This document shows positions 8,264 through 57,303 of a stretch of DNA of 64,000 bases, in pieces; within the stretch, counting starts at the first letter, position 1; each line of letters opens with the position of its first letter. Both the position numbers and the translations under genes were made by a program. Below the pieces are notes generated by a model that had not been told where the DNA came from, did not search any database, and saw only the letters and a program-made list of their open reading frames with translations. This stretch comes from Octopus sinensis (lineage: Eukaryota): positions 3,348,001 to 3,412,000 of the forward strand of contig NC_043026.1 in NCBI RefSeq assembly GCF_006345805.1, read 5' to 3'.

Positions 8264-10332
8264 ATGAAGGAAAAAAACCTTCAGTATCTTCTCATTTTGT
8301 AATAATTTCCACAGATTTATCGAACTATTTGCTTTTGTAAATAGATCTTTAAAATTGTGTGTGTATCATTCACCTACGACAGTGGCTCAATATATTCTTA
8401 CGGTCAACTTTCAGTTACTCGCGTGCACTCCTAGTCTTCATTATTAATTCAATCCCCAACCAAATTGAATGCATTGTTTTTAGCAATGATGCTTTTAGCA
8501 AATAAGCCACATTTTTAGATCAAGTGATTGAAATTTAGTTCATTAAGCTAGCTCAAAATACGTGAGGTCAAAAATGAGAGACTAAGACAAAAATTGAATC
8601 TGAAAAAAATTATATATAATTAAAAAAAAGTAAAAAATAGTAAAATAAAATTTCGAAATGAACAAAAGAATTGATTTCTTTAAAGCTTGCAGCACTAGAT
8701 AGCAAAGCATTTTCTATTTACAGTTTTAAAAAAATATTTAAACAAATGAAAGCTGATGAACAAATTGAGTGCAAAATTTAGAAATGACCCTATAGCCTTT
8801 TTTTTTTTTTTGTAAAAAAAAAATTATGGGTCGTTATTATCAATTTTGCTTAAATTACTATTATGTGGGGTTTTTTAATTACAATATCAAATTTATGTGC
8901 AAACTGACAGACTAGTCTTTTCATTAAAATGGGAAATAAATAGCGCTTTGAGTATTTTAGTTCAAACTTTTAAGTAAAAATTAAAAAATTAAAAAATAAG
9001 AAAGGGATTTGTTATTTTAGTTTTAAAATTCTAACTTAAGCAGCAATATTTAAATGTTCTTCTTCTTATCCTCCGGTTACCAGGTCTGGTGACTCTCCCA
9101 TATTGCTAGAACAATTTCAACGGTAACTTTCTGACCGTCCTTAACCAACGATCCCATAAAATATAACAGCTCCCTAATTTTACTTAGTGTGTTTATTTTC
9201 GAACTTATGAACAACTGACCGATATAGAGTGCCCGAGATGGCAATAATAACGAAGTTATTATTGACTTGAAAAGTTACCCGATGAAAGCTGATAATAAAA
9301 GGATGAGAAAGTAAATAAGAATGTGAAAATAACAGGAAAATAAGAAAATTATATTTATCACTCCCAAAATACTATACAGGTATGATTCACTGCAGATGTT
9401 CATGAAGAACTCATGGAGACACGAGGAAGCACGGACACACCTTTGCATTCCGAATTTTCGTTCTGTAATTTCAGTGTGTTGCAAACCCTAACCCCGAACC
9501 AGATCAGGGGATTTCATAGCGTAGACAACAGACCCTGCGGTAGGCGGCACGCTAAAGTAGCATTGAAATTTCTTCTGTCAGTCGCAGTACCGGATGCATT
9601 ATTCTGAATTTATTAACATTTTGAGACAATGAAGATAGCACAATGGACTCCCGAATACAAAAAGATCAACAGAAAAACTCCAGCAATTAAGCGGAGACCT
9701 TATTTGAAGGTTTATCGAGATTGCTTCAAACGCTAAAGTGTTACTCACAATCAAAAATATATATACAAAGACATGTAGCATATTTTTCTTGTGTGTGTGT
9801 GTGTGTGTACAAAGGTGGACCCAAAAGTAATCGGAAACCTTCTCTGTGGGATCAGCCCTTTGTAGTTGGGGTTTCCGCCACTTGATGCAACCCTCAGGCA
9901 TCAGCCTGCCTGCCGGCATTATCCTCTGGGCTCATACTGCCACTTGCTACGTCTTTACTTTGCAATGCTTCTCCCTGTTCGTCGATTTTCGCTGTGGCTG
10001 AAAAAAAAAAGAACAGTGTGCTTCCGTGAAATTGTTTTCTGCTGGGAAAACGGTGGCTGAAACAGTTGTCATGCTTCAAACAGCTTACAAGGACGTTGCC
10101 ATGAGCAAAACACAGGTTTACGAGTGGTTTCCACGCTTTAGGGATGGTTACTTGTTGCTTGAAGACCAACCTCATTCAGGACTACCGTCGACCCGAACGA
10201 ATGAATAAAAAATATCATGAAAATTCCTGAACTGATCTTGGAGAACCGTCACCGAACAACTGACGTATTTTTTGATATTGTAAGAATTAGCACTTCCTTC
10301 TCAAAGCTTGGATTCGAAATCAGACCCAAGAA

Positions 10333-12196
10333 ATCTTCTCGGACGAAGAGCATAATCAACACCTTCACCTGCTTTTCGGACGACTACGTCAATTTGGAAT
10401 TGTTATCAACCCTACCAAATGTTTGTTCGGAGTTGCTTCCCTTCATTTTCTCGGCCATATAGTCGATAAAAATGGAATTCGTCCCCTTCCCGAGAAAGTC
10501 AAGGCCATCGTGGATTTTCCACCACCCACATCTCTCCGCAAATTAAGGGAATATCTCGGTCTAGCGAATTTCTATCGACGGTTCGTGCCCCACCTCGCTG
10601 AAATAGCGCAACCGCTCACGGATTTGCTACGTCAGCGAACCTGCAAAAATGCAGATATAGCTCTGACCGAAGATCAACTCGTTTCTTTCGCTGCCCTGAA
10701 AAAAGCGTTATCTAGCGCTACCATGTTGGTTTATCCAAAACCAGACGCCCCACGATGTTTACTCGTTGATGCATCCGATTCCGGAATCGGAGGTGTGCTA
10801 CAACAGCTTGTTGACGGTATATGGCAACCGTTGTCTTTCTTTTCTAAGCGGTTAAAACCCGCGGAAACCAAATACAGCACATTCAGTCGGGAATTATTGG
10901 CGGCATACCTGGCCGTTAAGCATTTCCGTCATATGCTAGAAGGTACCAATTTTGCCATATACACCGACCACAAGCCATTAGTATACGCATTTAACACCAA
11001 ACCGGATCGCCATTCGCCAAGAGAAATACGCCACCTCGACTTCATATCGCAGTACACGACGGATATACGCCACATCAAAGGGACGACCAACGTGGCAGCC
11101 GATGCACTTTCACGTGCGCAGATCAATGCTATCCACACCACGTCTACAATTGATCTGGCACGTATAGCAGCTGACCAGGAGAATGACGAAGAACTTCTAA
11201 AGCTCCGGAATTCGTCATCTCTGAAATTTCAGCATGTTCCGCTACCATCATCCACAGCCCATATTTGGTATGATATTTCCACTGGTTACCAACGCCCTTA
11301 TGTACCACAGAAATATCGTCGAGAAGTTTTCTCCGCTCTACATTCTCTGTCACATCCTGGTATTCGCTCCACTCAAAAGCTAATATCGACCCGTTTTGTG
11401 TGGACCAGTATCAACAAGGATATCAGAGAATGGACCAAGTGCTGTGTTGCGTGCCAAAAAGCGAAAATCCACCGGCACATAAAATCACCAATCGGTTCAT
11501 TTTCGCAGCCCGATGCACGATTTCAGCACGTTCACATTGATATTGTTGGACCCCTGCCACCTTCGCAGAACTATTCATATTTGCTAACTTGCGTAGATAG
11601 GTTCTCGCGATGGCCCGAAGCCTGGCCCCTATCTGATATATCAGCAGAAACGGTCGCTAAAACGCTGATATCACAATGGGTTTCGCGTTTTGGCACACCC
11701 GCAACAATTACCACCGACAGAGGACGTCAGTTCGATTCCCACCTTTTCACCGAGCTGACTCGTCTCCTCGGGTGTAAACACACCCGCACTACAGCTTACC
11801 ACCCTGCAGCAAATGGCATGGTGGAACGCTTTCACCGCCAACTCAAGGCATCTATAAAAGCTGCTCCAGACAGTTCTCACTGGTTGGAACATCTCCCTCT
11901 CATCCTCCTTGGGGTCATCCTCCTACAAGGTCATCAAAAGAGAACCCAAATATTTCGTCCTCGATATTGGAGGTAAACGAAATACGGTCTCGATTGATCG
12001 TTTAAAAAAAGCTTTCATCGAGGAGGACTTACATTCAGTCCCCTCTTTTCCTCAAACAGACTCGGCAACTCCAGCGAACACCACAGATTCTGCACAACCC
12101 CGACACACCAAATCAGGAAGAACAGTTCGATGGCCAGCAAGGTTTGTGCAAGTTTTTCGGGTAAGTTCTGAACTCCTAACGTATCCATCTTCCTAA
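10333..12196 (+). CDS. Truncated Gypsy pol: RT thumb, RNase H, integrase (frameshifting deletion near 11915)
   Basis: Open frame 10333-11976: [13 protein letters not shown], RNase [30 protein letters not shown], integrase HHCC, core [24 protein letters not shown]; tail [27 protein letters not shown] in another frame. Confidence 0.9.
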
Positions 12197-22016: not shown

Positions 22017-23332
22017 TTAATATTTAGCTTCAATCACACTCTGACATCTTCGACTGCATGGGGAAATTAAATTTTCAATTTCTTGCTGTGTGATCTTATT
22101 CCATTCTTCCCGAAGGGCATTCCATAATTGCTCGGTTATTGTAGGATTTCTGGCATTCGAACGTTCTCCTAGAATATTCCACACATTTTTAATAGAATTG
22201 AGATCTGGGCTTTGAGCAGACCAATCCATAGCAATAACTTTTTCAGCCTTGAGGAAGTTCATGACCACCTTAGCCTTGTGACATGGGGCATTGTCCTGCA
22301 TGAATATGGGTGGTCGCTTAGTTGAATTTCTTAGCACAGGCAAGACATGATCTTTTACAAGTTGTTTATAAACTCCTGCGTTTACCTTTCCATGTAATCG
22401 CACCAAAGGGCCCACAACATCTCCAGATATCATCCCCCAAACCATGACACTTCCTCCACCAAATTTAACACTAGTCTTAAGGCATTTAGGCGACAATTTT
22501 TCACCTACTTTTCTACGAACGTACCTTTTCCCATCTGAGCCAAATTACATAAACTTAGATTCATCACTGAAATGCACCGTTTGCCATTTTTCTTGAAACC
22601 ACAACACATGTTCGGTTGCAAAGGTAAGGCAACACTTTTTATTCTTGGAGCTGATCAGTGGCTACACTGCAGGTGCTCTTGCTTGTAGGTCATGTTCAAC
22701 TAAACAACGAGACACAGTTTTTCGAGATAAAGTTTTCTTCAATACAATGCTCATTTTCCGAGAAACAGCAGCAGCAGTTTTAAATCTGTCCTTTTTAACC
22801 AACTTTACCATAGCACGATCTTCTCTCTTGGTCGTTTTTCTTGGCCTACCTGTAGACTTTCTTGCTTCACACGAATACCATGAACAACATTTTTTGACTT
22901 GTTAACAATCTTTGCAATAGACCCAATACTTAAATTATCCTTCTTTCGAAGCTTAATAATCTGCTGACGAATTAGTAACGGAGTAAGTGGCATTATATTA
23001 AAGTGCACTGCAGATATTCTTACTAATGTTTAGTAAACGAACCGTCACGTAAACAAATTCAAAACATTTGAGTTCGCCGGTTAAATATACTAAAACACGG
23101 AGTAAAAGCAACCGTTCTGATCATTTTGGCTGCCATGGGTTTTGCAGTAAATCACTAAATCATCCATAACTTTTGTATTATCCTCTCAAATTACACCAAA
23201 ATCGCAGACAATAACAAATAATGTCGTATTTATTGTCTGTGAAAATTATAGAAGATAAAACAACTTTGATAAGAAATTATACTTACTTTTCTGATGAAAA
23301 CAATGCCGTTCTGAACATTTTGACCGTAACTG
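22017..23332 (-). mobile_element. Tc1-family transposon (DD34E type), decayed, only the 5' TIR retained
   Basis: Transposase relic 22017-22993: TGRPRKT, VHFSDESKF, GGGSVMVWG, FMQDNAPCH, SPDLNSIKNVW (E to K); 5' end TA|CAGTTACGGTC at 23332; internal direct repeat at ~23111 and ~23305. Confidence 0.88.
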
Positions 23333-31022: not shown

Positions 31023-33749
31023 TGGGTAGGTAAGGTAATCGAGGTAGTCAGAGTAAGTGACAGAGTAATTAAAATTAGATTAGTCCTTCACCATAGGACA
31101 GCTACCATCATCTCGGCATATGCCCCTCAACCAGGGCTACCGGAAGGACAAAAAGACCAATTCTATGACACCCTATTGCGGACTACCTCATTGACAAATG
31201 ACAGTGACCTTCTCTTCGTGGCAGGTGATTTCAATGGACATGTTGGACGACATGTCGGGGGCTTCCATGGCGTCCATGGAGGCTACGGTTTCGGCTCTCG
31301 TAATGAGGAGGGAACCAGGCTGCTGGAGTTCTGCGATGCAAATGACCTTATGGTCTGCAATACCAACTTCAGGAAACCCACCTCTCACCTAGTCACCTAC
31401 CGTTCTGGCAGATACACCAGCCAGATTGACTACATCCTTGCCAGAAAAAGGGAAAGAGGGCTGATTATAAATGCCAAAACCTTTCCAGGCGAAGAATGTA
31501 CTCCCCAACATAGATTAGTGGCTAGTGACTTCAGGATCAGAGCTAAATGGTTGCCCAGAAGAAGACCAGCTTGGAGGAGAAGGGTCTGGAAGCTTAAAGA
31601 TCCTGCAAATGGACAGAGATTTAGAGACATACTACTCTAGGCCTTTGACGAAATAGAAGGGGATATAGCTTCACTTAATGTGGAAGACAACTGGAGATTC
31701 CTTCGGGACAATCTGCTGACAGCCACTGACCAGATCTGTGGATGGAGCAAAGTACCATCTCGACCCAGAGTAACATGGTGTGGAACACTGTAGTTGACAG
31801 GGCTATTAGACAAAAGAGACAGGCTTGGAAGGACTGGAAGAACGGTGGTAGCAGGGAATTGTATCAGACAGCCAGAAGGGAAGCTAGGAGACAGGTTTAT
31901 CTCGCCAGAGGGGAAGCAGATAAGAAAAAATTTGCCAATGTTCTGAGCCGTGAGGATGAAAGACTTGAGGTATTTCGTGTTGCAAGACAGTGTGTAAGAG
32001 AGAATCGTGATGTGGTAGGAGAGAAGTGTGTTCGCATGGATGATGGTTCACTTGCGCTAAATGAGGATGCAAAGAGAGAGGTTTGGAGATGCCACTATGA
32101 AGGGTTGCTGAATAAAGAAAATGAATGGGATAAAGAGAGTCTGCCAAATGTTGACCCAACAGAGGGACCAGCTATCCGAGTTGATAGTTCCGTGGTAGCT
32201 AAGGCAATTAGAAGCATGAAGACAGGGAAAGCCCCAGGCCCATCAGGAATTACTGCAGAGATGCTCAAAATATCTGGCAGTGTCAGCTGTAACCTAGTCA
32301 CCCGTATAGTCAACCAGGTGATACACGAAGGAGTCATACCCAATGACTGGTGTAGCAGCATACTAGTCAACTGCTACAAAGGTAAAGGTGATGCCCTGGA
32401 TATAAATAATTACAGAGGTATCAAGCTGTTGGATCAGGTAATGAAGGTTACGGAGAGGGTCATAGCCCAACTAATTAGAGAGAGAGTTAGTTTAGATGAG
32501 ATGCAGTTTGGGTTCGTGCCAGGGAAAAGCACCACTGATGCTATATTCCTGGTAAGGCTACTGCAGGAGAAATACCTAGCCAAAGATAAGCCCCTGTACC
32601 TGGCTTTCGTTGACATGGAGAAAGCCTTTGATAGGGTCCCCCGATCCCTCATCTGGTGGTCAATGAGGAAACTAGGGATAGATGAATGGCTGGTGAGGGC
32701 TGTGCAAGCCATGTACAGAGATGCCGTAAGTAAGGTTAGGGTTGGCAAATGTACACAGAAGAATTCAAAGTAGAGGTTGGGGTCCACCAGGGTTCAGTAC
32801 TCAGCCCCCTCCTATTATCATAGTCCTCCAGGCAATTGTGGAGGAATTCAAGACAGGCTGCCCCTGGGAGCTCCTCTATGCTGACGACCTCGCTCTAATT
32901 GCTGAATCACTATCAGAACTGGAGCAGAAGTTCCAGATGTGGAAGGAGGGTTAGAATCGAGGGGCCTTAGAGTCAACCTAGCTAAAACCAAAGTACTAAT
33001 AAGTAGAAAGGTAGACAATCCACAAATATCCTCAGGAAGATGGCCCTGCTCGATCTGTAGAAAAGGTGTAGGTAGAAACTCTATAAGATGTACCCAGTGT
33101 AAGCTATGGACACATAAGAGGTGCAGCAATGTCAAAGGTAGGCTAACTGGGAAGATAGTTTTTGTATGTGGCAGATGCTCGGGAGCATTGACCTCCGAAA
33201 ATCTGCAGAAACACAACTTCCGTCACTTTCCGGGGGGAAAAGCTAGAAGTAGTTGATAGCTCCCAATATCTAGGTGACCAAGTCAGTAGTGGGGGTGGGT
33301 GCGCTGAAAGTGTAACTGCTAGAATAAGAATAGCCTGGGCAAAGTTTAGGGAGCTCTTACCTCTGCTGGTGACTAAAGCCTCTCGCTCAGAGTAAAAGGC
33401 AGACTGTATGATGCATGTGTACGAACAGCTATGCTACATGGCAGTGAAACATGGGCCGTGACTGCTGAGGACATGCGTAAGCTCGTGAGGAATGAAGCCA
33501 GTATGCTCCGATGGATGTGTAATGTCAGTGTACTTACACGACAGAGCGTTAGTACCTTGAGAGAAATGTTGTACCTAAGAAGCATCAGTTGTGGTGTGCA
33601 AGAGAGACGATTGCGCTGGTATGGTCATGTGGCGAGAATGTGGATGAAGATAGGTGTGGGAGAAAGTGCGAATCCCTAGCAGTTGAGGGAACCCGTGGAA
33701 GAGGTAGACCCAGGAAAACCTGGGACGAGGTGGTGAAGCACGACCTTCG
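31023..33749 (+). mobile_element. RTE-clade LINE ORF2 (APE endonuclease, RT, PHD-like finger), 5'-truncated, 3' end lost in gap
   Basis: EN: SAYAPQ, VAGDFNGHVG, QIDYIL, PQHRLV; RT: KAPGPSG, NYRGIKLL, QFGFVPGKSTTDAIF, FVDMEKAFDRVP, LLYADDL; C-terminus RRLRWYGHV, RGRGRPRKTW; one in-frame stop and several single-base frameshifts. Confidence 0.93.
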
Positions 33750-33849
33750 NNNNNNNNNNNNNNNNNNNNNNNNNNNNNNNNNNNNNNNNNNNNNNNNNNN
33801 NNNNNNNNNNNNNNNNNNNNNNNNNNNNNNNNNNNNNNNNNNNNNNNNN
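33750..33849. other. Assembly gap (100 N)
   Basis: Run of N; true size unknown. Confidence 1.
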
Positions 33850-35038: not shown

Positions 35039-35862
35039 AGATGTCTATGAATTGTACAAGATTTGGCTGCTATTTCTAGCTATGGAAGAGAGTTATCTAT
35101 GATTTAAGCGAGATCTGGTTGCTGTTTCTAGTTATGGAAGAGAAATCACTATGTTTCGTGCCAGATTTGGCTGCTATTTCTAGCAATGAAGAGATGTCCA
35201 TAATTTGTGCAAGATTTGGCTGCTATTTCTAGCTATGGAAGATAGTTATCTATGATTTAAGCGAGATCTGGTTGCTGTTTCTAGTTATGGAAGAGAAATC
35301 ACTATGTTTCGTGCCAGATTTGGCTGCTATTTCTAGCTATGGAAGTGAAATGTCTATGATTAGTGCAATATCTGGTTGCTATTTCTAGCTATGGATGAGA
35401 GATTTCTATTATTTGTGCAAGATTTGGCTGCTATTTCTAGCTATGGATGAGAGATGTCTATTATTTGTGCGATATCTGGCTGCTATTTCTAGCAATGGAA
35501 GAGATGTCCATAATTTGTGCAAGATTTGGCTGCTATTTCTAGCTATGGAAGTGAAATGTCTATGTTAGTTCGATATCTGGCTGCTATTTCTAGCTATGGA
35601 AGAGAGATGTCCATAATTTGTGCGAGATTTGGCTGCTATTTCTAGCTATGGATGAGAGATGTCTATTATTTGTGCGAGATTTGGCTGCTATTTCTAGCTA
35701 TGGAAGAGAAATGTCTATGATTAGTGCGATATCTGGCTGCTATTTCTAGCTATGGATGAGAGATGTCTATTATTTGTGCGAGATTTGGCTGCTATTTCTA
35801 GCTATGGAAGAGAAATGTCTATGATTTGTGCGAGATTTGGCTGCTATTTCTAGCTATGGAAG
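35039..35862 (+). repeat. 52-bp tandem array, ~16 diverged copies, in putative intron 1 of ZNF gene 1
   Basis: Unit ATTTGTGCGAGATTTGGCTGCTATTTCTAGCTATGGAAGAGAGATGTCTATG; period 52 (e.g. 35641 to 35693). Confidence 0.95.
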
Positions 35863-36867
35863 CCACATCCTCCATCGTTGCTGTGTTTGTTGTGTTTTGA
35901 GAAATATTCTCAAATACACCCCAACCGCTGAAATGTTGAGAAACCAATACTTTATTATTATTATTTATCGAATGTTTCTTGATATAACTACCGATGTGTG
36001 CTCACTCAACTAGCAATTTGATTCGTCATAACTTCGGGAAAAATGGATATTTTTGGTAATGAAATTTTCTAGAAATACTTTTCAGACAATGTGGATTACG
36101 AATATGTTGGAATTTGTTGTGAAAAAAATATAATTGGGAGAAAGGGTTACATGTTTTATGTCTTCGACTTTGTTTCCTCATATATTTTAACGACACAACT
36201 GTTCCCCACATCTGTCTTGTTATGAGGTGATGCAGATCAATCACAGGGAATATTGTGTGTCGCATGTATCTACGTACAACTCTTTATCTGTCTACCTCTG
36301 TCTCTTATGCTTTTCTCTTTGCGAGCTTTCACCTTCTATATATTTACCACATTCTCTCTCACTCTTTCTCTCTATATGTATATCTCTCGTGCTGATATTT
36401 GTATATGTCTTGAATCTGCAATTTTTAAGTAGTTTCTGTGTCTTACACTGTTGTTTCTTTATTATTTCAGGACATATCAAATGACATTGGGGTAACTGAA
36501 GATATTTCAAAATTTTTATCGTGTTTTGAAGACAAAGAAAATGCTATTGAAAGCAGATATATAATACGATTTCTGTAAAGTTATCATGGCATTCCAGTGC
36601 AATATATGCTCTGTTATTATTATCGAACGTTCCTTGCATTTCTGACTACAGTGTCAACAAAACGAATTTGTGTGCAAATTAAACTTGGATAAATTGAGAA
36701 AAAAGTTCTGAGACAAAGGTAACATTGGACAGAAATACAGTGATTGAAATATTGGCAAGGTATAACCTATAAGAACAAAATAAAAAATATATGTTTGCGT
36801 ATATATATTTATATATTTATCGTCATCATCATTATTATTATTATATATTGATTTGAAAAGAAAAATT

Positions 36868-43852: not shown

Positions 43853-44927
<1,075 letters not shown>

Positions 44928-45549
44928 TTACCTTCTCAAATCACAATGCATATATATTTCTTGCTTTTGTTCTTATACTTTATTCTTTACAATTACTCAT
45001 ACTGCTGTATTTTTGTCTAGTGTTACCTTTGTCTAAGAACTCTTGTAAATTTATTCAAGTTTAGTTTACACAATCTCATCTTGTAGACACTACAATCAGT
45101 GTACACATTTTGCTAATAATCACAGTTCAGAGGAAATATTTCACAGTAATTCTGCCAAAGATTTATAGAAACAGTGTTATATATCTCTTCAGTACAACAT
45201 TTTTCTTCAGTCTTCAAAAGATGATAGATAAGGAGCATATATCTCTTGGTATCCCAAACGTCATCAGATATTCTGAAATAATAAAGAAACAACAGTGAAA
45301 GATATAGAGGTTACTTTATAAATACAGATTCAACAGTGGAAAATCTACAACACGTCTGTAGAGAGGAACTGTAGAAATAAACATCTACCTCACAACTGAA
45401 CATTTTAATTTACTAGCAGAGACACCTGGTGTTGTCCGCAAATGAAATTTTGTATATTTTGGAAGAAAAAAGCAAAATATGTTGTATAGAATTTGTGATT
45501 CTAAATTCAATTTATTCTTCAATTGAGATACAATTTATTCCTTAATTAC

Positions 45550-45944
45550 TCTTTACTCTTTTACTTGTTTCAGTCATTTGACTGCGGCCATGCTGGAGTA
45601 CCGCCTTTAATCGAGCAACTTAACCCCGGGACTTATTCTTTTGTAAGCCCAGTACTTATTCTATCGGTCTCTTTTGTCGAACCGCTAAGTAACGGGGACA
45701 TAAACACCCCATCGGTTGTCAAGCAATGCTAGGAGGACAAACACAGACACACAGACATACACGCACACATGTATATATATATATACATTCTTTTCAGTTT
45801 CCGTCTACCAAATCCACTCACAAGGCTTTGGTCGGCCCGAAACTATAGTAGAAGACACTTGCCCAAGATGCCATGCAATGGGACTGAACCCGGAACCATG
45901 TGGTTGGTAAACAAGCTACTTACCACACAGCCACTCCTGCGCCT
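45550..45944 (-). mobile_element. SINE family A, full length (in putative intron 1 of ZNF gene 2)
   Basis: Reverse complement of 1582-1984. Confidence 0.85.
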
Positions 45945-46287
45945 ATTGGAAAATCAATTCTGAATTTATAATACAAAAATAATAATAATGATGATGATGA
46001 TAATAAAACGAAAATACAAAATTAACCCCTTTTATGAAAGGAGATAAATTCTACCGAAGTCCTCTCCCCACCCCTAGGAAAAGATTTTACCCACAAATTT
46101 CGTTATAATCGTAATGTATAAAATTTCATTTAAAAAAAATAAAACCATTTTCCTAAAAGTTATTAGGGAAAAACTCGGATCTTGTGAATTTTCCGAAGTC
46201 CTCTCCCCATCCCGCCGTTGCTTTCCACGCATTTTTCCTTTCATTTTCGTTTCCTGCTCCCCATTTTTTAATACCCGTTGCACTATT

Positions 46288-47339
46288 CATAGACACCTCT
46301 CTTCCATAGCTAGAAATAGCAGCCAAATCTCGCACAAATCATAGACACCTCTCTTCCATAACTAGAAATAGCAGCCAAATCTCGCACAAATCATAGACCC
46401 CTCTCTTCCATAGCTAGAAATAGCAGCCAAATCTCGCACAAATCATAGACACCATCTCTTTCATAGCTAGAAATAGCAGCCAAATCTCGCACAAATCATA
46501 GACACCTCTCTTCCATAGCTAGAAATAGCAGCCAAATCTTGCACAAATCATAGACACCTCTCTTCCATAGCTAGAAATAGCAGCCAAATCTCGCACAAAT
46601 CATAGACACCTCTCTTCCATAGCTAGAAATAGCTGCCAAATCTCGCACAAATCATAGACACACCTCTCTTCCATAGCTAGAAATAGCAGCCAAATCTCGC
46701 ACAAATCATAGACACCTCTCTTCCATAGCTAGAAATAGCAGCCAAATCTCGCACAAATCATATAGACACCTCTCTTCCATAGCTAGAAATAGCAGCCAAA
46801 TCTCGCACAATCATAGACACCTCTCTTTCATAGCTAGAAATAGCAGCCAAATCTCGCACAAATCATAGACACCTCTCTTCCATAGCTAGAATAGCAGCCA
46901 AATCTTGCACAAATCATAGACACCTCTCTTCCATAGCTAGAAATAGCAGCCAAATCTCGCACAAATCATAGACACCTCTCTTCCATAGCTAGAAATAGCT
47001 GCCAAATCTCGCACAAATCATAGACACCTCTCTTCCATAGCTAGAAATAGCAGCCAAATCTCGCACAAATCATAGACACCTCTCTTCCATAGCTAGAAAT
47101 AGCAGCCAAATCTCGCACAAATCATATAGACACCTCTCTTCCATAGCTAGAAATAGCAGCCAAATCTCGCACAAATCATAGACATCTCTCTTTCATAGCT
47201 AGAAATAGCAGCTAAATCTCGCACAAATCATAGACACCTCTCTTCCATAGCTAGAGATAGCAGCCAAATCTCGCACAAATCATAGACACCTCTCTTCCAT
47301 AGCTAGAAATAGCAGCCAAATCCCGCGCAAATCATAGAC
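46288..47339 (-). repeat. 52-bp tandem array, ~20 homogeneous copies, in putative intron 1 of ZNF gene 2
   Basis: CATAGACACCTCTCTTCCATAGCTAGAAATAGCAGCCAAATCTCGCACAAAT at 46288, 46340, 46392 and onward; reverse complement of the 35039-35862 unit. Confidence 0.97.
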
Positions 47340-47444
47340 ATCATTCATTCATAAAAGATAGAAAAAACACAAAGAATCGAGTCGTCAAATATCGAAAGTC
47401 TACAGAATTAAAAAGACTGAATATTTTCCTTGTTTAATACTTAC

Positions 47445-47570
47445 AGCAATGTTTTATAAAGGATAGTGTTGTTTACAAAGTATTATAAATGTATTCATAA
47501 ATTCAAGCAATGGACATAAATAATTCGATGCTAAAATGGAAAGAGATGGACGCATGGTGCGCATGCGCGT
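47445..47570 (-). promoter_or_regulatory. Putative promoter motif and non-coding exon 1 of ZNF gene 2
   Basis: TGCGCATGCGCG at 47558-47569 (full NRF1 consensus match) and minus-strand GTAAGT donor at 47444. Confidence 0.62.
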
Positions 47571-47966
47571 TTTTGGACTCGATGGTTCCATTAGCTCACG
47601 CTTGTTACCTCCCTTGATGTTTCATGTCGGTCTTTACATCTCCTATATTGAGTGCGTCTCATTATAGCATCTCTGGGTTAAATTTCTAGAATACATCTTT
47701 ACTGTGCAAATAAAAAGCACACATGTAGACATGAATATATATACAGACACAGTCATGCATAAGTATATATTTACAGATATATATATATATATATACTTTA
47801 TTTTAAGCAGCAGAAAATTCAACAAAATCTGTTACTCTGAGTTTCTCGTTGCCGTTCATCAGACAGTTTTTGCTAGCAAAAACTGCTTAAAATAAAGCAT
47901 ATTACTCTACCACTGGTATTTGAGTACTCTTTTTTCCACCTTGTTTCACATTTATGTGTTTACTCC

Positions 47967-48010
<44 letters not shown>

Positions 48011-48011
<1 letters not shown>

Positions 48012-48400
48012 CTCTTTTACTCTTTTACTTGTTTCAGTCATTTGACTGTGGCCATGCTGGAGCACCGCCTTTAGTCGAGCAGATCGACCCCGGAACTTAT
48101 TCTTTTGTAAGCCCAGTACTTATTCAATCGGTCTCTTTTGCCGAACCGCTAAGTTACGGGGACGTAAACACACCAGCATCGGTTGTCAAGCAATGCTAGG
48201 GGACAAACACACACACACATATATATATACATATATACGACAGGCTTCTTTCAGTTTCCGTCTACCAAATCCACTCACAAGGCATTGGTCGGCCCGGGGC
48301 TATAGCAGAAGACACTTGCCCAAGATGCCACGCAGTGGGACTGAACCCGAACCATGTGGTTGGTTAGCAAGCTATTTACCACACAGCCACTCCTGCGCCT
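48011..48400 (-). mobile_element. SINE family A, full length, between the divergent ZNF promoters
   Basis: Reverse complement of 1582-1984. Confidence 0.85.
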
Positions 48401-48898
48401 ATGTATAATATTTATATATTATTTTTTTAGGGAATAAAAATTCCGGGATCTTTGATTTTAGCTCAATAGAGGCAATAGGATTGGTTAAAATTCGAAAACG
48501 TAGCTTAATTCGAAAAATTAAGCTACGTTAAACTTACAAATTACAATTTTCTCAAGAAAGCCAAGAGAAAAAAAAATGTGGAATCCAATGTAGATCCCAA
48601 CAAATATCTTACAAACTATAGAATTTTCTCAATAAAGCCAAGAGAAAAAGATGTTTTATAAACACATTCTACCAGTATACGAAGTTTAAAAGTGTTTAGT
48701 TAACTAGAAATTGTGTTAAAAATCTGCCGGTCAAAGCGAAAAGATCCAAATAAAGTTTGCCTTTCACCTTTTTGCTGGGGTTCAATAAAATAAATACCAG
48801 TTAACAACTGAGGTCCGCGGTAATCGACTTACGCACCCTCCCCTCCCCCGAAATTGCTGGCATTGTGCCAAAATGTGAATATCTCACACCTATTACAT

Positions 48899-49062
48899 AC
48901 GCATGCGCACTAAGCCTATTTCCGCTTCTATTCATTACATCTTGACAAGCTTTGTTTGGCGCCAGAATTTCTATTAATTCACTCGGCAATACATTTATAA
49001 AACATTTCTCTACCACCTGACGCACTCATAACAACGACACCATCTTTTATAAAGACATTTCC
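48899..49062 (+). promoter_or_regulatory. Putative promoter motif and non-coding exon 1 of ZNF gene 3
   Basis: ACGCATGCGCAC at 48899-48910 and GTAAGT donor at 49063; exon and donor flanks align with the other two paralogs. Confidence 0.62.
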
Positions 49063-49675
49063 GTAAGTATTAAACAATGAAAACATTTAATCTTTCAATA
49101 ATTCGTGTATCAGATTTTGTTCCACATTTAGCTGCTATTTCTAGCTATGGTGGCTACCTTCTACTCTCTCCATCGTTTCCTCTTAAGTTTGTTGGGTATT
49201 TTAGTTGGAGAAATATCCCAAATACTCTACAACCCCAGAAATGTTGAGAAACGAATGTTTTATTATAATTTATCGAATGTTCGTTTCTTGGTATCGGGAA
49301 GGGGAAGAAATAGTAAGCGGGGCAAAATGAGTAATTTCTTATTATTTTCTTACCATTATGACATTGGTTAGAAAGATTTCAACTGAAATCATTGTAGGTT
49401 TTAGCCAGAATTATTCTAAAGGACATTTCAGAACTCTTCTGGAAACTTCCGTGGGATGTTATAAAATCCTGGGCTTTTTTTTCCGATTTTTACTTAGTGA
49501 ATCGCTTGCTTTCTGGAAGCTACTCATTCCCACATAGTTCTTGTTTTGTAAAATTAAAGATACCCGACGTTGCTTTCCTCCATAATGACCAAAAGTCATA
49601 AAGTTATAAACTTGAAGAAAGAAAGCCTTGCATATTCGTTCTACACCCGTTTCATGTGTGTATGTAAAATCGGTT

Positions 49676-51596
49676 AATATAGGGCGTAACAAATATCAGA
49701 AAATCAAAAAAAAAATGTGTGTAATAGGTGTAAAACAACTTCCTATGAACGAATATGAAAAAAAAAATTCGCGCACGCGAAAGGGGGGTGGGAGAGAGGC
49801 CTCGGAAAATTCACATCGGGAAGTTCCGAAAGCGTCTGAGGAGCTGACCCGGGCACCAAAACAAAAAAAAAATAGTGTAATATGTGTAAAACAACTTGCT
49901 CTAAACGAATATGACAAAAAAAAATGCGCTCTCGCGAAAGAGGGGTGGGGGAGAGGCCTCGGAATATTTATATCGGGAATTTCCGAAAGCGTCTGAACCG
50001 GGCACAAAAACAAAAACAAAAACAGCGTAATAGGTGTAAAACAACTTGCTCTAAACGACTATCATGAAAAAAATGCGCGCTCGCGAAAGGGGGGTGGGGG
50101 AGAGGCTTCGGAAATTTCACATCTTCAGTCCACGGCCTTTAAACTAAGAAAAAATAGTGTAATTGGTGTAAAACTACTTGTTCTAAACGAGTATCAAGAA
50201 CACACACTCACACATGAATCATAAACTCCGTATTTCGCAAAAAAAAAAATAATAAAGAGAAGAAATTCTGGAAAAAGTGAAGAAATGTTGGATCTCCGCC
50301 ATGTGAATCAAAATACGTGTCAGAAACATCTTGAAATACTACAGAAATTATGTTACGAAAATGATAATGTATACATACCTCTTTGAGTGGTCCATCGATA
50401 ACGATGATAAAGAAATGAGTTGGATTTGAACTCAGAATATTGACTAACACAACTACATACTACAAGACTCAAAATATTCAGCCAAGTCACCACCCTTTAA
50501 CTAGCAATAATAATAACATCAATAACATAACAGCCAAAAGATTTATTTGTTCTGAAAATAACAATCATAGTAAATAAATATGTTCTTTAATATTCACATT
50601 CATGTGCACAGTTAAACACACTTACATACAAACAGTCACGCATGCATAATACAGAACGGAACACATAAATGAAGGATGCATTACTTAGTATATATTACAT
50701 CGAGAGAATTTTGATTAATAAGTCAAATATGCAAATTATAAAGATAATTAATTGCTTTACTAAACAGTGTTGTAAAGGTGAAAAAATAAATTTGGGAAAA
50801 AAATACACGCCAAAACTAATTAATAAAGGATAATTAGGGAAGGATTGACACAAAATAATTATTTTTTCTGTCTCTTTTTTTCTGATAAATGCATCTTAAT
50901 AAGTGAGAAGAATTGCATATATCTGAACTATTTCAAAGAAAAGCATAAATTTAATGTTTAAAATAGCTTTAACCAAGGAATGAGATCCAACATTTCTTCA
51001 CTTTTTCCAGAATTTCTTCTCTTTATTTTTTTTTTTTTTGCGAAATACGGAGTTTATGATTCATGTGTGAGTGTGTGTTCTTGATACTCGTTTAGAACAA
51101 GTAGTTTTACACCAATTACACTATTTTTTCTTAGTTTAAAGGCCGTGGACTGAAGATGTGAAATTTCCGAAGCCTCTCCCCCACCCCCCTTTCGCGAGCG
51201 CGCATTTTTTTCATGATAGTCGTTTAGAGCAAGTTGTTTTACACCTATTACGCTGTTTTTGTTTTTGTGCCCGGTTCAGACGCTTTCGGAAATTCCCGAT
51301 ATAAATATTCCGAGGCCTCTCCCCCACCCCTCTTTCGCGAGAGCGCATTTTTTTTTGTCATATTCGTTTAGAGCAAGTTGTTTTACACATATTACACTAT
51401 TTTTTTTTTGTTTTGGTGCCCGGGTCAGCTCCTCAGACGCTTTCGGAACTTCCCGATGTGAATTTTCCGAGGCCTCTCCCCCACCCCCCTTTCGCGTGCG
51501 CGAATTTTTTTTTTCATATTCGTTCATAGGAAGTTGTTTTACACCTATTACACACATTTTTTTTTTGATTTTCTGATATTTGTTACGCCCTATATT
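49676..51596. mobile_element. Foldback-type element: ~620-bp near-identical modular TIRs around a 685-bp AT-rich spacer
   Basis: 49676-50296 is the reverse complement of 50982-51596; arms contain ~3.3 modules of ~140-155 bp; TATGTAAAATC flanks both sides (49661-49671 and 51597-51607). Confidence 0.85.
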
Positions 51597-52004
51597 TATG
51601 TAAAATCTGCAAATTTCCAAACAGAATCGAACTGTCATTTGCTTCCACGGAAATATCCGAAGTGAAATGGTTTGACTTTTGTCGAGTTATATCGAAGGAA
51701 TGCCGTCATAAGTCTTGTACTAGCTTCAGATTTGTTTGAATGAAACTGAGAGGTGCTTTAATTCTTGTCATCTCTGTGGGACGTAGCTTTCAGACCGGAA
51801 TTTAGGGCCGCCTTCCCGTTTAATCACATAGTTCTTTATTGACGAATGGAAATTACTCTCCAGTATTTATATGGAATTGAATTTGGTAAAATGAACGAGA
51901 ACCAAATGAAAATATCTTTGGAATTGACGCTTTAATACGTCTCCAGGAAAGGTATTTGACCGCTCTTGTCATTTTATCAAGAGCAAGTAGTAAAAGAAAT
52001 CAGT

Positions 52005-52460
52005 TTTAAGTGAAAAAATGTTTCCGAAAGTCATGGGAGCTGTGCTGTTTTCTGATTTTGTAAATAAGCCGACAGGTGGAGTTTGAAAAGGGGCTCAGAG
52101 TTATTGTTAATGAGATGGTTAATAATTTTATGGGTGTCTGCATATGCAGTAATGTACAAATGTCTGGGAAGTGAACAGTGTATGAGTCAGATATATGCTT
52201 GCGTGTGTATGGAGGGGAGAAAATCAGGTGTAGTGTTGGCGAATCTCAGGAAGCATGGAAGATTTGAAGGATGCAGTGCTCCAACAACTAACTACTGATG
52301 CCGGCAGTTTGTTCCATGCTTCAGCAACTCTCAGCGTGAAAAAATGTTTCCTAAAGTCATGGGAGCTGTGCTGTTTTCTGACTTTGTAAATATGTCCACG
52401 GGTGTTAGACAGGTGGAGTTCAAAAAGGGGCTCAGAGTTATTGTTTGTAAGATGGTTAAA
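52005..52460 (-). mobile_element. Two adjacent CR1-type 3' fragments
   Basis: Minus strand LSNTRGHIYKVRKQHSSHDFRKHFFTLRVAEAWNKLPASVV; same family as 33985-34480. Confidence 0.8.
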
Positions 52461-52479
52461 TGAAGGGCACATGTCAATC

Positions 52480-52766
52480 CCAACATCCGAATCGTAGCCG
52501 AAGCCAGTGCCGCCTCGACTGGCTTCCATAAAATGCACCAATCCGACCGTGGCCGATGCCAGCCTCGCCTGGCACCAGTGCAGGTGGCACGTAAAAAGCA
52601 CCCACTACACTCACGGAGTGGTTGGCGTTAGGAAGGGCATCCAGCTGTAGAAACTTTGCCAGATAAGACCGGAGCCTGGTGCAGCCTTCTGGCTTCCCAG
52701 ATCCCCGGTCGAACCGTCCAACCCATGCTAGCATGGAGAACGGACGTTAAATGATGATGATGATGA
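52480..52766 (+). mobile_element. Family C retroelement
   Basis: GGTGGCACGTAAAAAGCACCCACTACACTCACGG..GGAAGGGCATCC..ATGATGATGATGATG. Confidence 0.8.
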
Positions 52767-53619
52767 TCTTTGTGGGAATATCTCATTCAACCATAATAAA
52801 TATGAAGACAGCCAAATAGAAACTGAAGAACATCTACACCACTTTCTGCATCGAATGTTTGTTTCTTGATATAGAGAAAGGGAACAAAACTTAGTAGGTG
52901 GGGCAAAATGAGTAATTTCTTTCACCTTTTTTAAAATTTTTTCTCTTTTTTTTCCCTTCAGTCTTTAAAGTCATGTTTTCAGTATTGACCTCTTTGGTGG
53001 GAAACCTGACTGCTGAGAAGCAAGCAGATGACTTAGTGGCAACTGAGAGGAGAGAAACAGCCCTATAATTGTTGCAGTTGTGGTAGGCTCCTTTACCCTC
53101 CTACAATGGGATAATGACACCTCTTTCCCTGTCAGGCTTTTCTAATTCCAATCAACAGAACAGCCTACTCTTCAAATTAACATGTAAGTGGCTGAGCACC
53201 CCACAGACACGCTCACCCATAACGGAGCTCTCACATATTAAGCATGTGACCATGTGATAAGGCTGGCCCTTCAAATTACTCGTACAATTCAGTTTTGTCA
53301 GCTGAGTGAACCTGGAGCAACATGTCTTGCTCAACAACACAGCACACTGCTGGGAATTGGAATTATGACCTTATTAGGAGCTGATTGCTCAGACCACTAA
53401 CCCCAATACCTTCACATACACACACATGTATATACATACACATACATATATATTAACGTGTAAGCATATATATATATATATATGTTTCCAGGTTCAATCC
53501 CACTGCGTACCTACTTAGGCAAGTATTTTATACAATAGACATTAGCCGACCAAATCCTTGTGATTGGATTTGGTAGATAGAAACTGAAGGAAGCCCAATA
53601 TATATATATATATATATAT

Positions 53620-53849
53620 ATCACAATCAAGGAACGGCCATAATAGGCCATTCACCCACTAGAAATAACAGCCAAAGCTTCAACCGCAAATAACATTAAT
53701 TCCGCAAACCAGGAGAAAATTAAAAAACATTTACCCTGTAATTTTTAATTTTCTCCTGGTTTGCGGAATTAATGTTATTTTGCGGTTGAAGCTTTGGCTG
53801 TTATTTCTAGTGGGTGAATGGCCTATTATGGCCGTTCCTTGATTGTGAT
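53620..53849. repeat. Near-perfect palindrome, ~107-bp arms, 15-nt loop
   Basis: 53620-53726 is the reverse complement of 53742-53849 with a single 1-nt indel; loop ACATTTACCCTGTAA. Confidence 0.95.
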
Positions 53850-54809
53850 GTTGAACTTATAAATGGTCTATGACTATTTAATTTTTTCCCACTAGGCCGC
53901 TGGTGGCAAAGAAATTCTACAAAATTTTTTTGCCACCCTATATTGATTAATATATTATATATATATATATATATATTAATGAGTATTTATGTGTATATAC
54001 ATATATATCTCTGTGTGTCTTTGTGACTGTTTGACGCCCCACCAACACTTGATAACCAGTGTTGGTGTGTATATGTCACCATTATTTAGTGGTTTCACAA
54101 AAGAGGCCAATATAAGTACTAGGCTCAAAAGTGAAGTCCTAGGGTTGATTTGATCAACTAACACCTTCTAAGGTGATGCTCCAGTATAGCCACAGCCAAA
54201 ACAACTGATACAAGGAAAAGTATATATATATATACATATATATATATGTGTGTGTGTGTGTGTGAATGTGTAGCTGGAGTTTAAAAATATGTTAGCTTCA
54301 CAGAAGATTTTCTGATGTAAATTCTAATAAATTAGAAAGTTCTGTTGTTCAGTTAAATGTTTATTTCTAGAATTTATCTCTATGGAAATGTTGAATCTGT
54401 ATTTTTTAAGTAGCCTCTCTATCTTACACTGTTGTTTCTTTATTATTTCAGAATATCAGATGACATTGGCATAACTGAAGATACATCCTCATTATTTATC
54501 ATCTTTTTAAAGACCAAAATGGAAATATTGTACAGAACAGATATATAAGATTGTTTCTCTAAATCTATGGCAGAATTCCTCTGATATATTTACTCTGAAA
54601 AGTATTATTAGCAAACCTTCTGGACATCACTGGCTGGAGTGTCTACAAGATGAGTCTTTGTTCAAACTAAACTTGGATAAATTTACTAAAGAACTTTGGG
54701 ACAAAGGTGATAAGGGACAGAAATAGAGCAGTCGAAATATTTGGAAACAAAATACTATAGAATCAAAAAGGTGAAAAAAGATATATACTGTGATTTTTGA
54801 AGAAAAATA

Positions 54810-55925
54810 ATGGAAAAGAGTGAGAAAATAAAGAAACTGATTTTTCCAGAAAATAGAGAAAAAGGGAGCCAAAAATTGTCACATGAGTGTGATGTCTGTA
54901 AAAAGTCTTTCTCTCAAAAGAGCAGCTTGAATACGCACAAACGTATTCATAGAGGAGAGAAGCCATTTCATTGTGACATTTGTGATAAATCATTCTCTCA
55001 GAGTTGTAACTTGAGTACACACAAACGTATTCATACAGGAGAGAAGCCATTTCACTGTAATGTCTGTAGTAGGTCATTCTCTAACCACAATGCTTTAAAT
55101 TCTCATATACGTGTTCATACAGGGGAGAAGCCATTTCACTGTGACACTTGTGGTAAATCATTCTCTATAAATGTTTCACTGACTAAACACAAACGTATTC
55201 ATACTGGAGAGAAGCCATATCACTGTGATGTCTGTGGTAAATCATTCACTCAAAATGGTAATTTATCTATACACAAGCAAATTCATACAGGAGAGAAGCC
55301 ATTTCACTGTGATGTCTGTGGTACATCATTCTCTCAGCGGAGTTCTTTAGATTCTCACAAGCGTTTTCATACAGGAGAGAAGCCATTTCACTGTGACATC
55401 TGTGACAAATCATTCCGGGGAAAAGACAGCTTGACCAAACACCGACGTATTCATATAGGAGATAAGCCATATGACTGTGACATTTGTGGTATATCATTCC
55501 CTCAGAAAGGTAGCTTGACTTCACACAAACGTATTCATACTGGAGAAAAGCCGTTTCACTGTAATGTCTGCAGTGCATCATTCTCTCAGCAAAGTGCCTT
55601 GGAGTCTCACATACGTGTTCATACAGGAGAGAAGCCATTTCACTGTGACATCTGTGGTAAATCTTTCCCTCAAAGTAATAACTTGACTATACACCAACTT
55701 GTTCATACAGGAGAGAAACCGTTTCACTGTGACACTTGTGGTAAATCATTCTCTCAAAAAAGTAACTTGACTAGGCACATACGTGTTCATACAGCAGAGA
55801 AGCCCTATCACTGTGATATCTGTGGTACATCATTCTCAGACCAAAGTGTTTTAAAATGTCACAAACGTAATCATGCCAGCGAGAGGCCTTATCACTGTGG
55901 TGTACTCGTATACATGCTCATATAG
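54810..55925 (+). CDS. C2H2 zinc-finger protein (ZNF gene 3), 371 aa, 12 fingers
   Basis: Intact ORF with TGEKP-linked fingers; N-terminus MEKSEK..LIFPE..EK..KLSH homologous to genes 1 and 2; acceptor ending 54451. Confidence 0.93.
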   Translation: MEKSEKIKKLIFPENREKGSQKLSHECDVCKKSFSQKSSLNTHKRIHRGEKPFHCDICDKSFSQSCNLSTHKRIHTGEKPFHCNVCSRSFSNHNALNSHIRVHTGEKPFHCDTCGKSFSINVSLTKHKRIHTGEKPYHCDVCGKSFTQNGNLSIHKQIHTGEKPFHCDVCGTSFSQRSSLDSHKRFHTGEKPFHCDICDKSFRGKDSLTKHRRIHIGDKPYDCDICGISFPQKGSLTSHKRIHTGEKPFHCNVCSASFSQQSALESHIRVHTGEKPFHCDICGKSFPQSNNLTIHQLVHTGEKPFHCDTCGKSFSQKSNLTRHIRVHTAEKPYHCDICGTSFSDQSVLKCHKRNHASERPYHCGVLVYMLI

Positions 55926-56620
55926 GATAGAAACCATATCATTTGTAGTAAATCCTTCTCTCAAAGTAGTGCTTAACTTCTCACAAACATTTTCATTCAA
56001 GAGAGACACCATATTCCTGTAACATCTCTTCTCTTTCATCAGTGCTTTAACTCATGAAGGTATTCATACAAAAGCCATGTTACTGTGACATCATCATCAT
56101 CATTTAACGTCTGCTTTTCATGCTAGCATGGGTTGGACGGTTCGACCGGGAATCTGGGAAGCCAGAAGGCTGCACCAGGCTCCAGTCTGATCTGGCAGTG
56201 TTTTTACCGCTGGATGCCTTCCTAATGCCAACCACTCCGTGAGTGTAGTGGGTGCTTTTTACGTGCCAGGGGAAGCTGGCAACGGCCATGATCGGATTGG
56301 TGCTTTTTACGTGCCACCGGCACGGAAGCCAGTCTAGGCATCTGTAACAAATATTTCTCTTTTAATAGTAAGCTAATTTATTGAGACACCCTATTCCTGT
56401 GATGTCTGTGATAAATAATTCTCCCTAAATGACAAATCAGAAACTCACAGACATTTTCACACAGAAGAGAAACCATATCACAATGATATCTGTGGGGAAA
56501 TCATTCACTATGAGTTCTCGCTTATCTGATCACAGACATATCCATACAAGAAGTCATTCACTCAAAATAGCAAATTACCTTCTCACAAACGAGATCATGG
56601 CAGGGCTGAAGTGTTCCCAC
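55926..56620 (+). pseudogene. Decayed zinc-finger units downstream of the ZNF gene 3 stop, interrupted by a family C element
   Basis: Finger-like DNA (GAAACCATATCA..AAATCATTC..CACAAAC) with stops and indels at 55926-56090 and 56380-56620. Confidence 0.7.
56090..56340 (-). mobile_element. Family C retroelement
   Basis: CATCATCATCATCATTTAACGTC..GGATGCCTTCCTAATGCCAACC..TTTTTACGTGCC twice. Confidence 0.75.
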
Positions 56621-56664
56621 TGATATTTGTGCTAAAACATTCCCTGTAAGTGACGACTTAACCC

Positions 56665-56880
56665 TTTACTATACTCTTTACTCTTTTACTTGTTTCAGTC
56701 ATTTGACTGTGGCCATGCTGGAGCACTGCCTTTAGTCGAGCAAATTGACCCTGGGACTTTGTAAGCCCAGTACTTATTCTATCGGTCTCTTTTGCCGAAC
56801 CGCTAAGTGACGGGGACGTAAACACACCAGCATCGGTTGTCAAGCAATGCTAGGGGACAAACACAGACACACAAACATAT

Positions 56881-56911
<31 letters not shown>

Positions 56912-57083
56912 CATATATACGACAGGCTTCTTTCAGTTTCCATCTACCAAATCCACTCACAAGGCATTGGTCGGCCCAAGGCTATAGTAGAAGACACTTG
57001 CCCAAGATTCCACGCAGTGGGACTGAACCTGGAACCATGTGGTTGGTGAGCAAGCTACTTACCACACAGCCACTCCTGCGCCC
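56665..57083 (-). mobile_element. SINE family A, full length
   Basis: Reverse complement of 1582-1984. Confidence 0.85.
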
Positions 57084-57303
57084 ATGTAGTTCATTCTGTC
57101 CAATGTGATGTTTATTCACGTTATTTTCAATTTGTCCTGCATTAACTCACAGCTTTCAAGTGATGACGATGTGGTTGAGTATTTTTAGAATAACATTGTA
57201 GGGTAGGTGTAAGAGGCCAACTCTGGTTAGTTTGAAAATAAAAGAGGTAGCATATTTGGGCCAGTTGTGGCTGGTTTAAATGCTAAACGGTTAACACTAG
57301 AAC

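Follow-up and report, generated by a model that had tools for sequence, protein, structure and literature searches.

A lineage-specific foldback insertion with long modular arms and Merlin-linked modules between two zinc-finger genes of Octopus sinensis

In this work we describe a foldback element in the genome of Octopus sinensis, which lies in a window of 64,000 nucleotides (nt; NCBI RefSeq assembly GCF_006345805.1, contig NC_043026.1, positions 3,348,001 to 3,412,000 of the forward strand). By the window we mean this whole stretch, and positions are counted from its first letter unless another sequence is named. The window is 100% identical to O. sinensis GCA_006345805.1 CM016888.1 (L002), an assembly that is named as Octopus sinensis in PMC10700109, the source of our species identities. 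The element, at 49661-51607 with its flanking repeats included, sits in a repeat-rich 9.9-kb stretch between two divergent zinc-finger genes, ZNF2 and ZNF3.

Two inverted arms and a spacer of 685 nt make up the element, which is bounded by two copies of the sequence TATGTAAAATC. The left copy (49661-49671) is followed by GGTT (49672-49675, plus strand), the first four inserted bases and the probable true left terminus (5'-GG). The left arm of 621 nt comes next (49676-50296, plus strand), consisting of the terminal 22-mer AATATAGGGCGTAACAAATATC, a series of modules and a unique inner part of ~100 nt. The non-palindromic spacer (50297-50981) separates it from the right arm of 615 nt (50982-51596, minus strand), which is the reverse complement of the left arm and runs up to the right copy of TATGTAAAATC (51597-51607). 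The left end reads GGTTAATATAGGG and the right end ...CCCTATATT; the right arm finishes in ...CGCCCTATATT, without the AACC that would mirror GGTT.

In a global alignment the arms differ from each other by 2 mismatches and one 6-nt indel, which falls within an (AAAAAC)n run. Tandem Repeats Finder reports a period of 157 with 2.8 copies and 84% matches, and each arm contains ~3.4 tandem modules of roughly 150 bp; those of the left arm (plus strand) are m1 at 49698-49857, m2 at 49858-50007, m3 at 50008-50139 and a partial m4 at 50140-~50200. A conserved core of 54 nt is present in four copies per arm, at spacings of 132-157 nt. Within the window the terminal 22-mer and the module core are confined to the two arms; shuffled sequences predict 0 matches. 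The spacer is 28% GC with no open reading frame (ORF) longer than 80 amino acids (aa) and no Pfam match, a tblastn search of the window and the spacer with Merlin-type transposases as queries gave no sign of a remnant, and an Rfam scan found nothing inside the element. These results bear out the anatomy proposed in a first-pass annotation of this DNA, namely near-identical, modular long inverted arms, a non-coding spacer, and an 11-bp flanking direct repeat with an extra GGTT on the left.

The history of the element can be read from Octopus vulgaris. In this species the orthologous locus (GCA_951406725.2 OX597841.1; L003) is collinear with the window, with a flank identity of 96.5-98.6%, and lacks window positions 49672-51607: the alignment stops at 49671 and restarts at 51597, with an overlap of 11 bases. 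The junction reads ...CATGTGTGTATGTAAAATC and, directly across the junction point, CGCAAATTTCC..., and holds one TATGTAAAATC (L003 7147-7157) with no GGTT, arm, spacer or gap. A sensitive blastn search with the element interior against 21 kb of L003 gave no match except an old remnant near 46 kb, described below. The inserted DNA is 1,925 bp long, from GGTT to ...CCCTATATT, and 11 bp of target were duplicated. Presence and absence at an orthologous site, with a single copy of the target where the site is empty, is what is expected of transposable elements in general, and the structure is a true lineage-specific insertion with a target-site duplication (TSD). With filled and empty sites to compare, neither a chance repeat nor a local inverted duplication can account for the structure, and an assembly artefact from a palindromic read is very unlikely.

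O. sinensis and O. vulgaris split ~2.5 million years (My) ago, as cited in PMC10700109, and the insertion is either younger than this split or still polymorphic. The arms differ at 0.3% of positions, compared with differences of ~1.4-3.5% between the flanks of the two species, which suggests that much less than 1 My has passed since the arms were identical, although this is a naive reading that arm-to-arm conversion or sequencing errors would distort. The observed/expected ratio of CpG is 1.32 in the arms, 0.67 in the spacer and 0.24-1.06 in 4-kb bins of the window; the high ratio of the arms fits a young insertion that is not yet deaminated. The empty site thus upholds the earlier proposal of a recent insertion of a mobile, non-coding, foldback-type element with long terminal inverted repeats (TIRs).

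The setting of the element differs from the one proposed by the first-pass annotation, which had placed it in intron 1 of ZNF3. The ZNF3 coding sequence (54810-55925, plus strand) specifies a C2H2 zinc-finger protein of 371 aa that is identical in O. vulgaris; the element is 3.2 kb upstream of it. The frame begins MEKSEKIKK..., with a stop codon four codons upstream. The paralogue ZNF2, also of the C2H2 type, opens with the same motif (MEKIEKSEE...); its 5' part occupies 44469-44924 on the minus strand, with the start codon at 44924, and is 4.7 kb from the element. In the two annotations on record ZNF3 begins with the ATG at 54810, downstream of the element, and the interval from 44924 to 54810 contains no gene. 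Given the start positions of ZNF3 and ZNF2 in both annotations, the element is intergenic, not intronic; an intronic position would require a non-coding first exon upstream of 49661 that neither annotation has.

An RNA copy of the element is predicted to fold back on itself. In the predicted structure the right arm pairs with 613 of the 621 bases of the left arm, and the minimum free energy is -1239 kcal/mol, against about -400 to -430 kcal/mol in shuffled sequences. The duplex of ~600 bp that had been proposed for an RNA copy is therefore matched by a predicted stem of ~613 bp. Given such a stem, effects on transcription, editing or silencing would be possible in principle; as far as the evidence goes, the insertion as such is most likely neutral. 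A 613-bp hairpin that is found in one species only is a convenient natural test case for the instability of hairpin DNA and, if it is transcribed, the locus suits the study of double-stranded RNA editing or silencing beside a ZNF gene.

Because the element encodes nothing, its relatives were sought through its arms. A word-indexed protein search with the minus-frame ORF of the arm gave no matches, and DNA pattern scans of viral contigs found nothing; the single match of a scan of metagenome contigs (L001) was dismissed as chance. An exhaustive HMMER search with the translation of 49676-49993 returned a single match (P0001, E 1.8e-5). In this protein three module-like repeats (38-49% protein identity) are fused to a segment of a DDE_Tnp_IS1595 (ISXO2-like) transposase, which Pfam recognises with an E of 3.6e-10, above the gathering score.

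The scaffold that encodes P0001 (L004; ENA, 1,662 bp) begins with unrelated sequence, which gives way to GGTTAAT at 290 and then to three tandem modules of 160-178 bp. Directly after the modules comes the 3' half of a frameshifted IS1595-like transposase, which ~500 nt of other sequence separate from the inverted module core CTCTCGCCCCCACCCCCTTCGCG that closes the contig. With blastn the O. sinensis element aligns from its first base, the G of GGTT, to L004 290-771, with 65% identity over 484 nt (E 5e-47, or E 4e-25 with default scoring against the whole window). L004 is thus an element of the same plan with an internal deletion that has left a transposase remnant inside it; the nearest named relative of this remnant is an ISXO2-like protein of Octopus bimaculoides (73% identity). 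Since the homologous element in L004 also starts with GGTTAAT, GGTT is templated and not filler. The 13-mer GAATCATAAACTC, which is common to the element and L004, was put down to chance, and alignments of the inner arm and the spacer to non-module parts of L004 were within the range of shuffled sequences.

A further relative is found in O. vulgaris (L007; OX597819.1, ~115.08 Mb). Here an intact IS1595-like ORF of 326 aa lies between inverted arms at 9017-9391 and 10865-11123, which are ~76% alike and both contain the module core, and a full module at 8805-8922 has 75% identity to the O. sinensis element. The ORF (9836-10816) is uninterrupted and includes an N-terminal Cys-rich segment; the annotation covers only its last 271 aa. 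The ORF is a candidate for supplying active transposase within the O. vulgaris/O. sinensis complex. The right terminus and the TSD of this element were also sought; its right arm is truncated and neither is readable. We also observed that L007 11300-11347, 180 nt beyond the right arm, is 82% identical to window 49622-49671 (plus the T at 51608), a stretch of 50 nt that comprises the left flank and the target site, and that this similarity ends exactly at the insertion point of the O. sinensis element. Another repeat may end at the insertion target, or the similarity may hint at a preferred target.

Two Logan contigs from two runs (L005 and L006) encode a full-length transposase of 315 aa (P0004), and in both the sequence runs out 220 nt downstream of the stop codon, within an inverted module core, ...GGACTGATCATGTGAATTTTCCGAGTGCCCTACCCC. 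This core matches the innermost module at 31 of 38 nt, with a score of 22 against 14.1 ± 2.1 in shuffled sequences. In L004, L007 and L005/L006 the core beyond the transposase gene is oriented as expected for a right-hand TIR. More distant IS1595-like proteins from other organisms (L011, L012 and L013) had no modules and no informative TIRs at their loci, and were of no help on TSD length.

Traces of related arms are also present in the window itself. A piece of the module had been reported to occur twice near 46 kb, and pieces are indeed present at 46052-46080 and 46184-46252 (minus strand; 76% over 69 nt), but the exact 25-mer is found only once and the second piece matches the core only. 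Together these pieces are an old arm remnant of the L007 family (46057-46287, minus strand), with one full and one half module, which is collinear with the left arm of L007 (8820-9064; 70% identity over 249 nt, E 5e-32). The remnant is also found in O. vulgaris (L003 2941-3053). Next to it we noticed a 52-bp satellite, which forms arrays at 46280-47340 (20 copies, 95% matches) and ~35052-35976. Each array abuts a Merlin-like arm remnant, at 46057-46287 and 36026-36126 respectively, and each has a ZNF start codon 0.7-1.1 kb downstream of it; in O. vulgaris the array is longer. This arrangement suggests either that gene and upstream repeat were duplicated together, or that the satellite is part of a Merlin-like element family.

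Eukaryotic IS1595-like transposases define the Merlin superfamily. Its relationship to bacterial IS1016/IS1595 goes back to Feschotte (2004), as summarised in PMC8101967. According to the same source, Merlin elements have TIRs of 24-462 bp that start with 5'-GG and TSDs of 8-9 bp, imperfect TIRs are common among them, tandem repeats such as 163-bp units occur inside them, and O. bimaculoides has an unusually large number of them (191 sequences; PMC8101967).

On this evidence the O. sinensis element is probably a non-autonomous class II (cut-and-paste) DNA transposon with foldback architecture and Merlin-linked modules, mobilised in trans after the split of the two species. In L004, L007 and L005/L006 IS1595-like transposase genes or remnants lie beside or between homologues of the arms, and the left end of the element is GG, kept as GGTTAAT in L004. 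Membership in Merlin is the best-supported reading, yet provisional, because of the 11-bp duplication, the right end without CC and the failure to find an autonomous copy of the same family.

Several observations weigh against a Merlin assignment. The identity between the modules and Merlin-associated arms is only 65-78%, so that the homology is that of a family group and not of the same family. There is no final CC at the right end, and the left end is longer by 4 nt. By the empty site the flanking repeat is 11 bp, compared with the 8-9 bp of Merlin; a TSD of 8-9 bp would need an imperfect right TIR (...CCCTATATTTA or ...TAT) whose last 2-3 bases match the target by chance (1/16 to 1/64). The arms, at 615-621 bp, are longer than the TIRs described for Merlin, although that range is descriptive and not a strict criterion. 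No autonomous copy with GGTTAATATAGGGCG termini and no second copy of the family, but only diverged relatives, came to light in viral and metagenome contigs or through proteins similar to the arm ORFs, a search that did not extend to octopus genomes at the DNA level. Furthermore, the spacer has no similarity to the interiors of L004, L005 and L007 or to transposases, the match in L005/L006 is short (z about 3.7 against shuffled sequences), and in L007 the truncated right arm now pairs with only a portion of the left arm, which does not include the full module.

The most likely history of the element is the following. An octopod Merlin-type transposon would have been internally deleted or rearranged, leaving a derivative with multiplied subterminal modules, and these reiterated modules would probably be bound by transposase. 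A transposase encoded elsewhere in the genome, presumably of the Merlin type (IS1595/ISXO2-like, DDE), would mobilise the derivative in trans; it would cut at the GG terminus and integrate the element with a staggered cut, duplicating TATGTAAAATC. In the O. sinensis lineage the element then landed between the two ZNF genes.

Alternatively, the modules could be a repeat in its own right, dispersed or satellite-like, that tends to occur within or close to Merlin elements, in which case the O. sinensis element would have been moved by another transposase or would be a composite of two inverted repeat blocks that moved together. The modest identity to Merlin-associated arms would suit such an origin, as would a spacer that matches nothing, the atypical TSD and right end, and the related remnant in the window that abuts the 52-bp satellite. 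We nevertheless consider it unlikely, as three independent loci have the module core inverted beyond a transposase gene, as TIRs would be, and the element has its GGTTAAT start in common with L004.

The first-pass annotation had favoured a different superfamily, with a non-autonomous Foldback/Mutator-like element (MULE) moved by a MULE transposase. TSDs are 9-11 bp in MULEs and 9 bp in Foldback (FB) elements. Long TIRs built of tandem subrepeats are indeed present, and the 11-bp repeat, whose true length is uncertain by 2-3 bp, is within the range of MULEs, not of FB. However, foldback architecture is not specific to one superfamily, and no MULE domain was found in the scanned ORFs of the window or in any related locus. 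Each locus in which relatives of the module lie beside a transposase has an IS1595-like enzyme (L004, L005/L006 and L007), and it is in the arms of such IS1595/ISXO2-like elements that the module homologues reside. With only the architecture and the 11-bp repeat as its basis, we find the MULE assignment improbable and have not retained it.

Insertion without any transposase is a much more doubtful proposition. Hairpin or extrachromosomal DNA could in theory have been taken up into a staggered double-strand break, in which GGTT would be filler, and the asymmetric ends (4 extra bases on one side) and the unusual length of the duplication are what one might then see, but GGTTAAT also starts the L004 homologue and the junctions are clean, with an exact duplication. 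It is scarcely credible that the structure is a local inverted duplication or an assembly artefact from a chimeric, palindromic long read: near-perfect arms in a PacBio-based assembly invite the suspicion, but neither arm nor spacer is at or near the O. vulgaris locus, the flanks are collinear with 11 bp of target duplicated exactly at the junctions, the arms enclose 685 nt of unique sequence, and the module family is present in other assemblies.

A Merlin-derived element of this kind invites a bolder proposal, which we regard as speculative and rather unlikely to hold in full. It may represent an undescribed, still active octopod branch of Merlin with foldback architecture, with arms of more than 600 bp made of ~150-bp putative transposase-binding modules and an 11-bp staggered cut, that seeds hairpin insertions beside rapidly evolving C2H2 genes and, if these are transcribed, feeds the ADAR or small-RNA pathways of coleoids. 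DNA transposons are generally described as quiet in cephalopods (PMC8967140), and full-text literature searches for cephalopod foldback elements or miniature inverted-repeat transposable elements (MITEs) returned nothing relevant. The element itself is an ordinary kind of mobile DNA; the points of interest are the link between Merlin and foldback architecture, the unusually long arms and a possibly longer duplication. The foldback architecture here most likely grew from Merlin and not from MULE elements, and a Merlin origin would correct the classification of such repeats in cephalopod repeat libraries.

The window contains other mobile DNA. At 53621-53950 a second insertion of ~330 bp lies in a (TA)n microsatellite, where O. 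vulgaris has plain (TA)n (L003 9155-9168). It forms a hairpin with arms of ~110 bp (CACAATCAAGG... and ...CCTTGATTGTG) and a 100-nt tail that ends in CCACCCTATATTGATTAAT, and may be a TA-targeting MITE; Rfam gave it weak microRNA-like matches, far below gathering scores. A third stretch that is absent from O. vulgaris (56322-57268, ~950 bp) includes a repeat of ~400 bp resembling a short interspersed nuclear element, which recurs with 87-88% identity at 45547-45943 and 48012-48402; near 45880 the copy has a tRNA-like head at its end. Remains of other mobile elements are a Gypsy-like pol fragment with RNase H and integrase (10423-11976), a reverse-transcriptase ORF (31742-32773) and a DDE_3 fragment of the Tc1/mariner type (22017-22496). 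A scaffold gap of 100 N (33750-33849) is far from the foldback element.

A known system with the same architecture is Foldback (FB) of Drosophila. FB elements have a 9-bp TSD and MULE-related partners. The O. sinensis element is like them in its long inverted arms of tandem subrepeats, its variable, mostly non-coding middle and its snap-back hairpin, and unlike them in that it has no sequence similarity to FB, no link to MULEs, and associated transposases that are IS1595-like. A precedent for very long, repetitive TIRs outside MULEs is Galileo and other foldback-like elements of the P superfamily (Drosophila buzzatii), most copies of which are non-autonomous. Galileo has a 7-bp TSD and a P-type transposase, and no P or THAP link is seen in the O. 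sinensis element.

The L007 element of O. vulgaris has the module core (GGGGTGGGGAGAGG-CTTCGGAAAATTCACA), the AATAGTGTAATAGGT segment and long inverted arms in common with the O. sinensis element. However, it belongs to an older, different family, with ~70-75% module identity and arms that are ~76% alike, it has one and a half modules compared with 3.4, and its right arm is truncated. The O. sinensis element departs from described Merlin elements in its arms of 615-621 bp, its 11-bp duplication, its right end without CC, and an interior with neither a transposase gene nor a remnant of one. It resembles them in having TIRs, a flanking duplication and a 5'-GG left terminus; internal tandem repeats are documented for Merlin, and in octopods the homologues of its modules form arms around DDE_Tnp_IS1595 genes.

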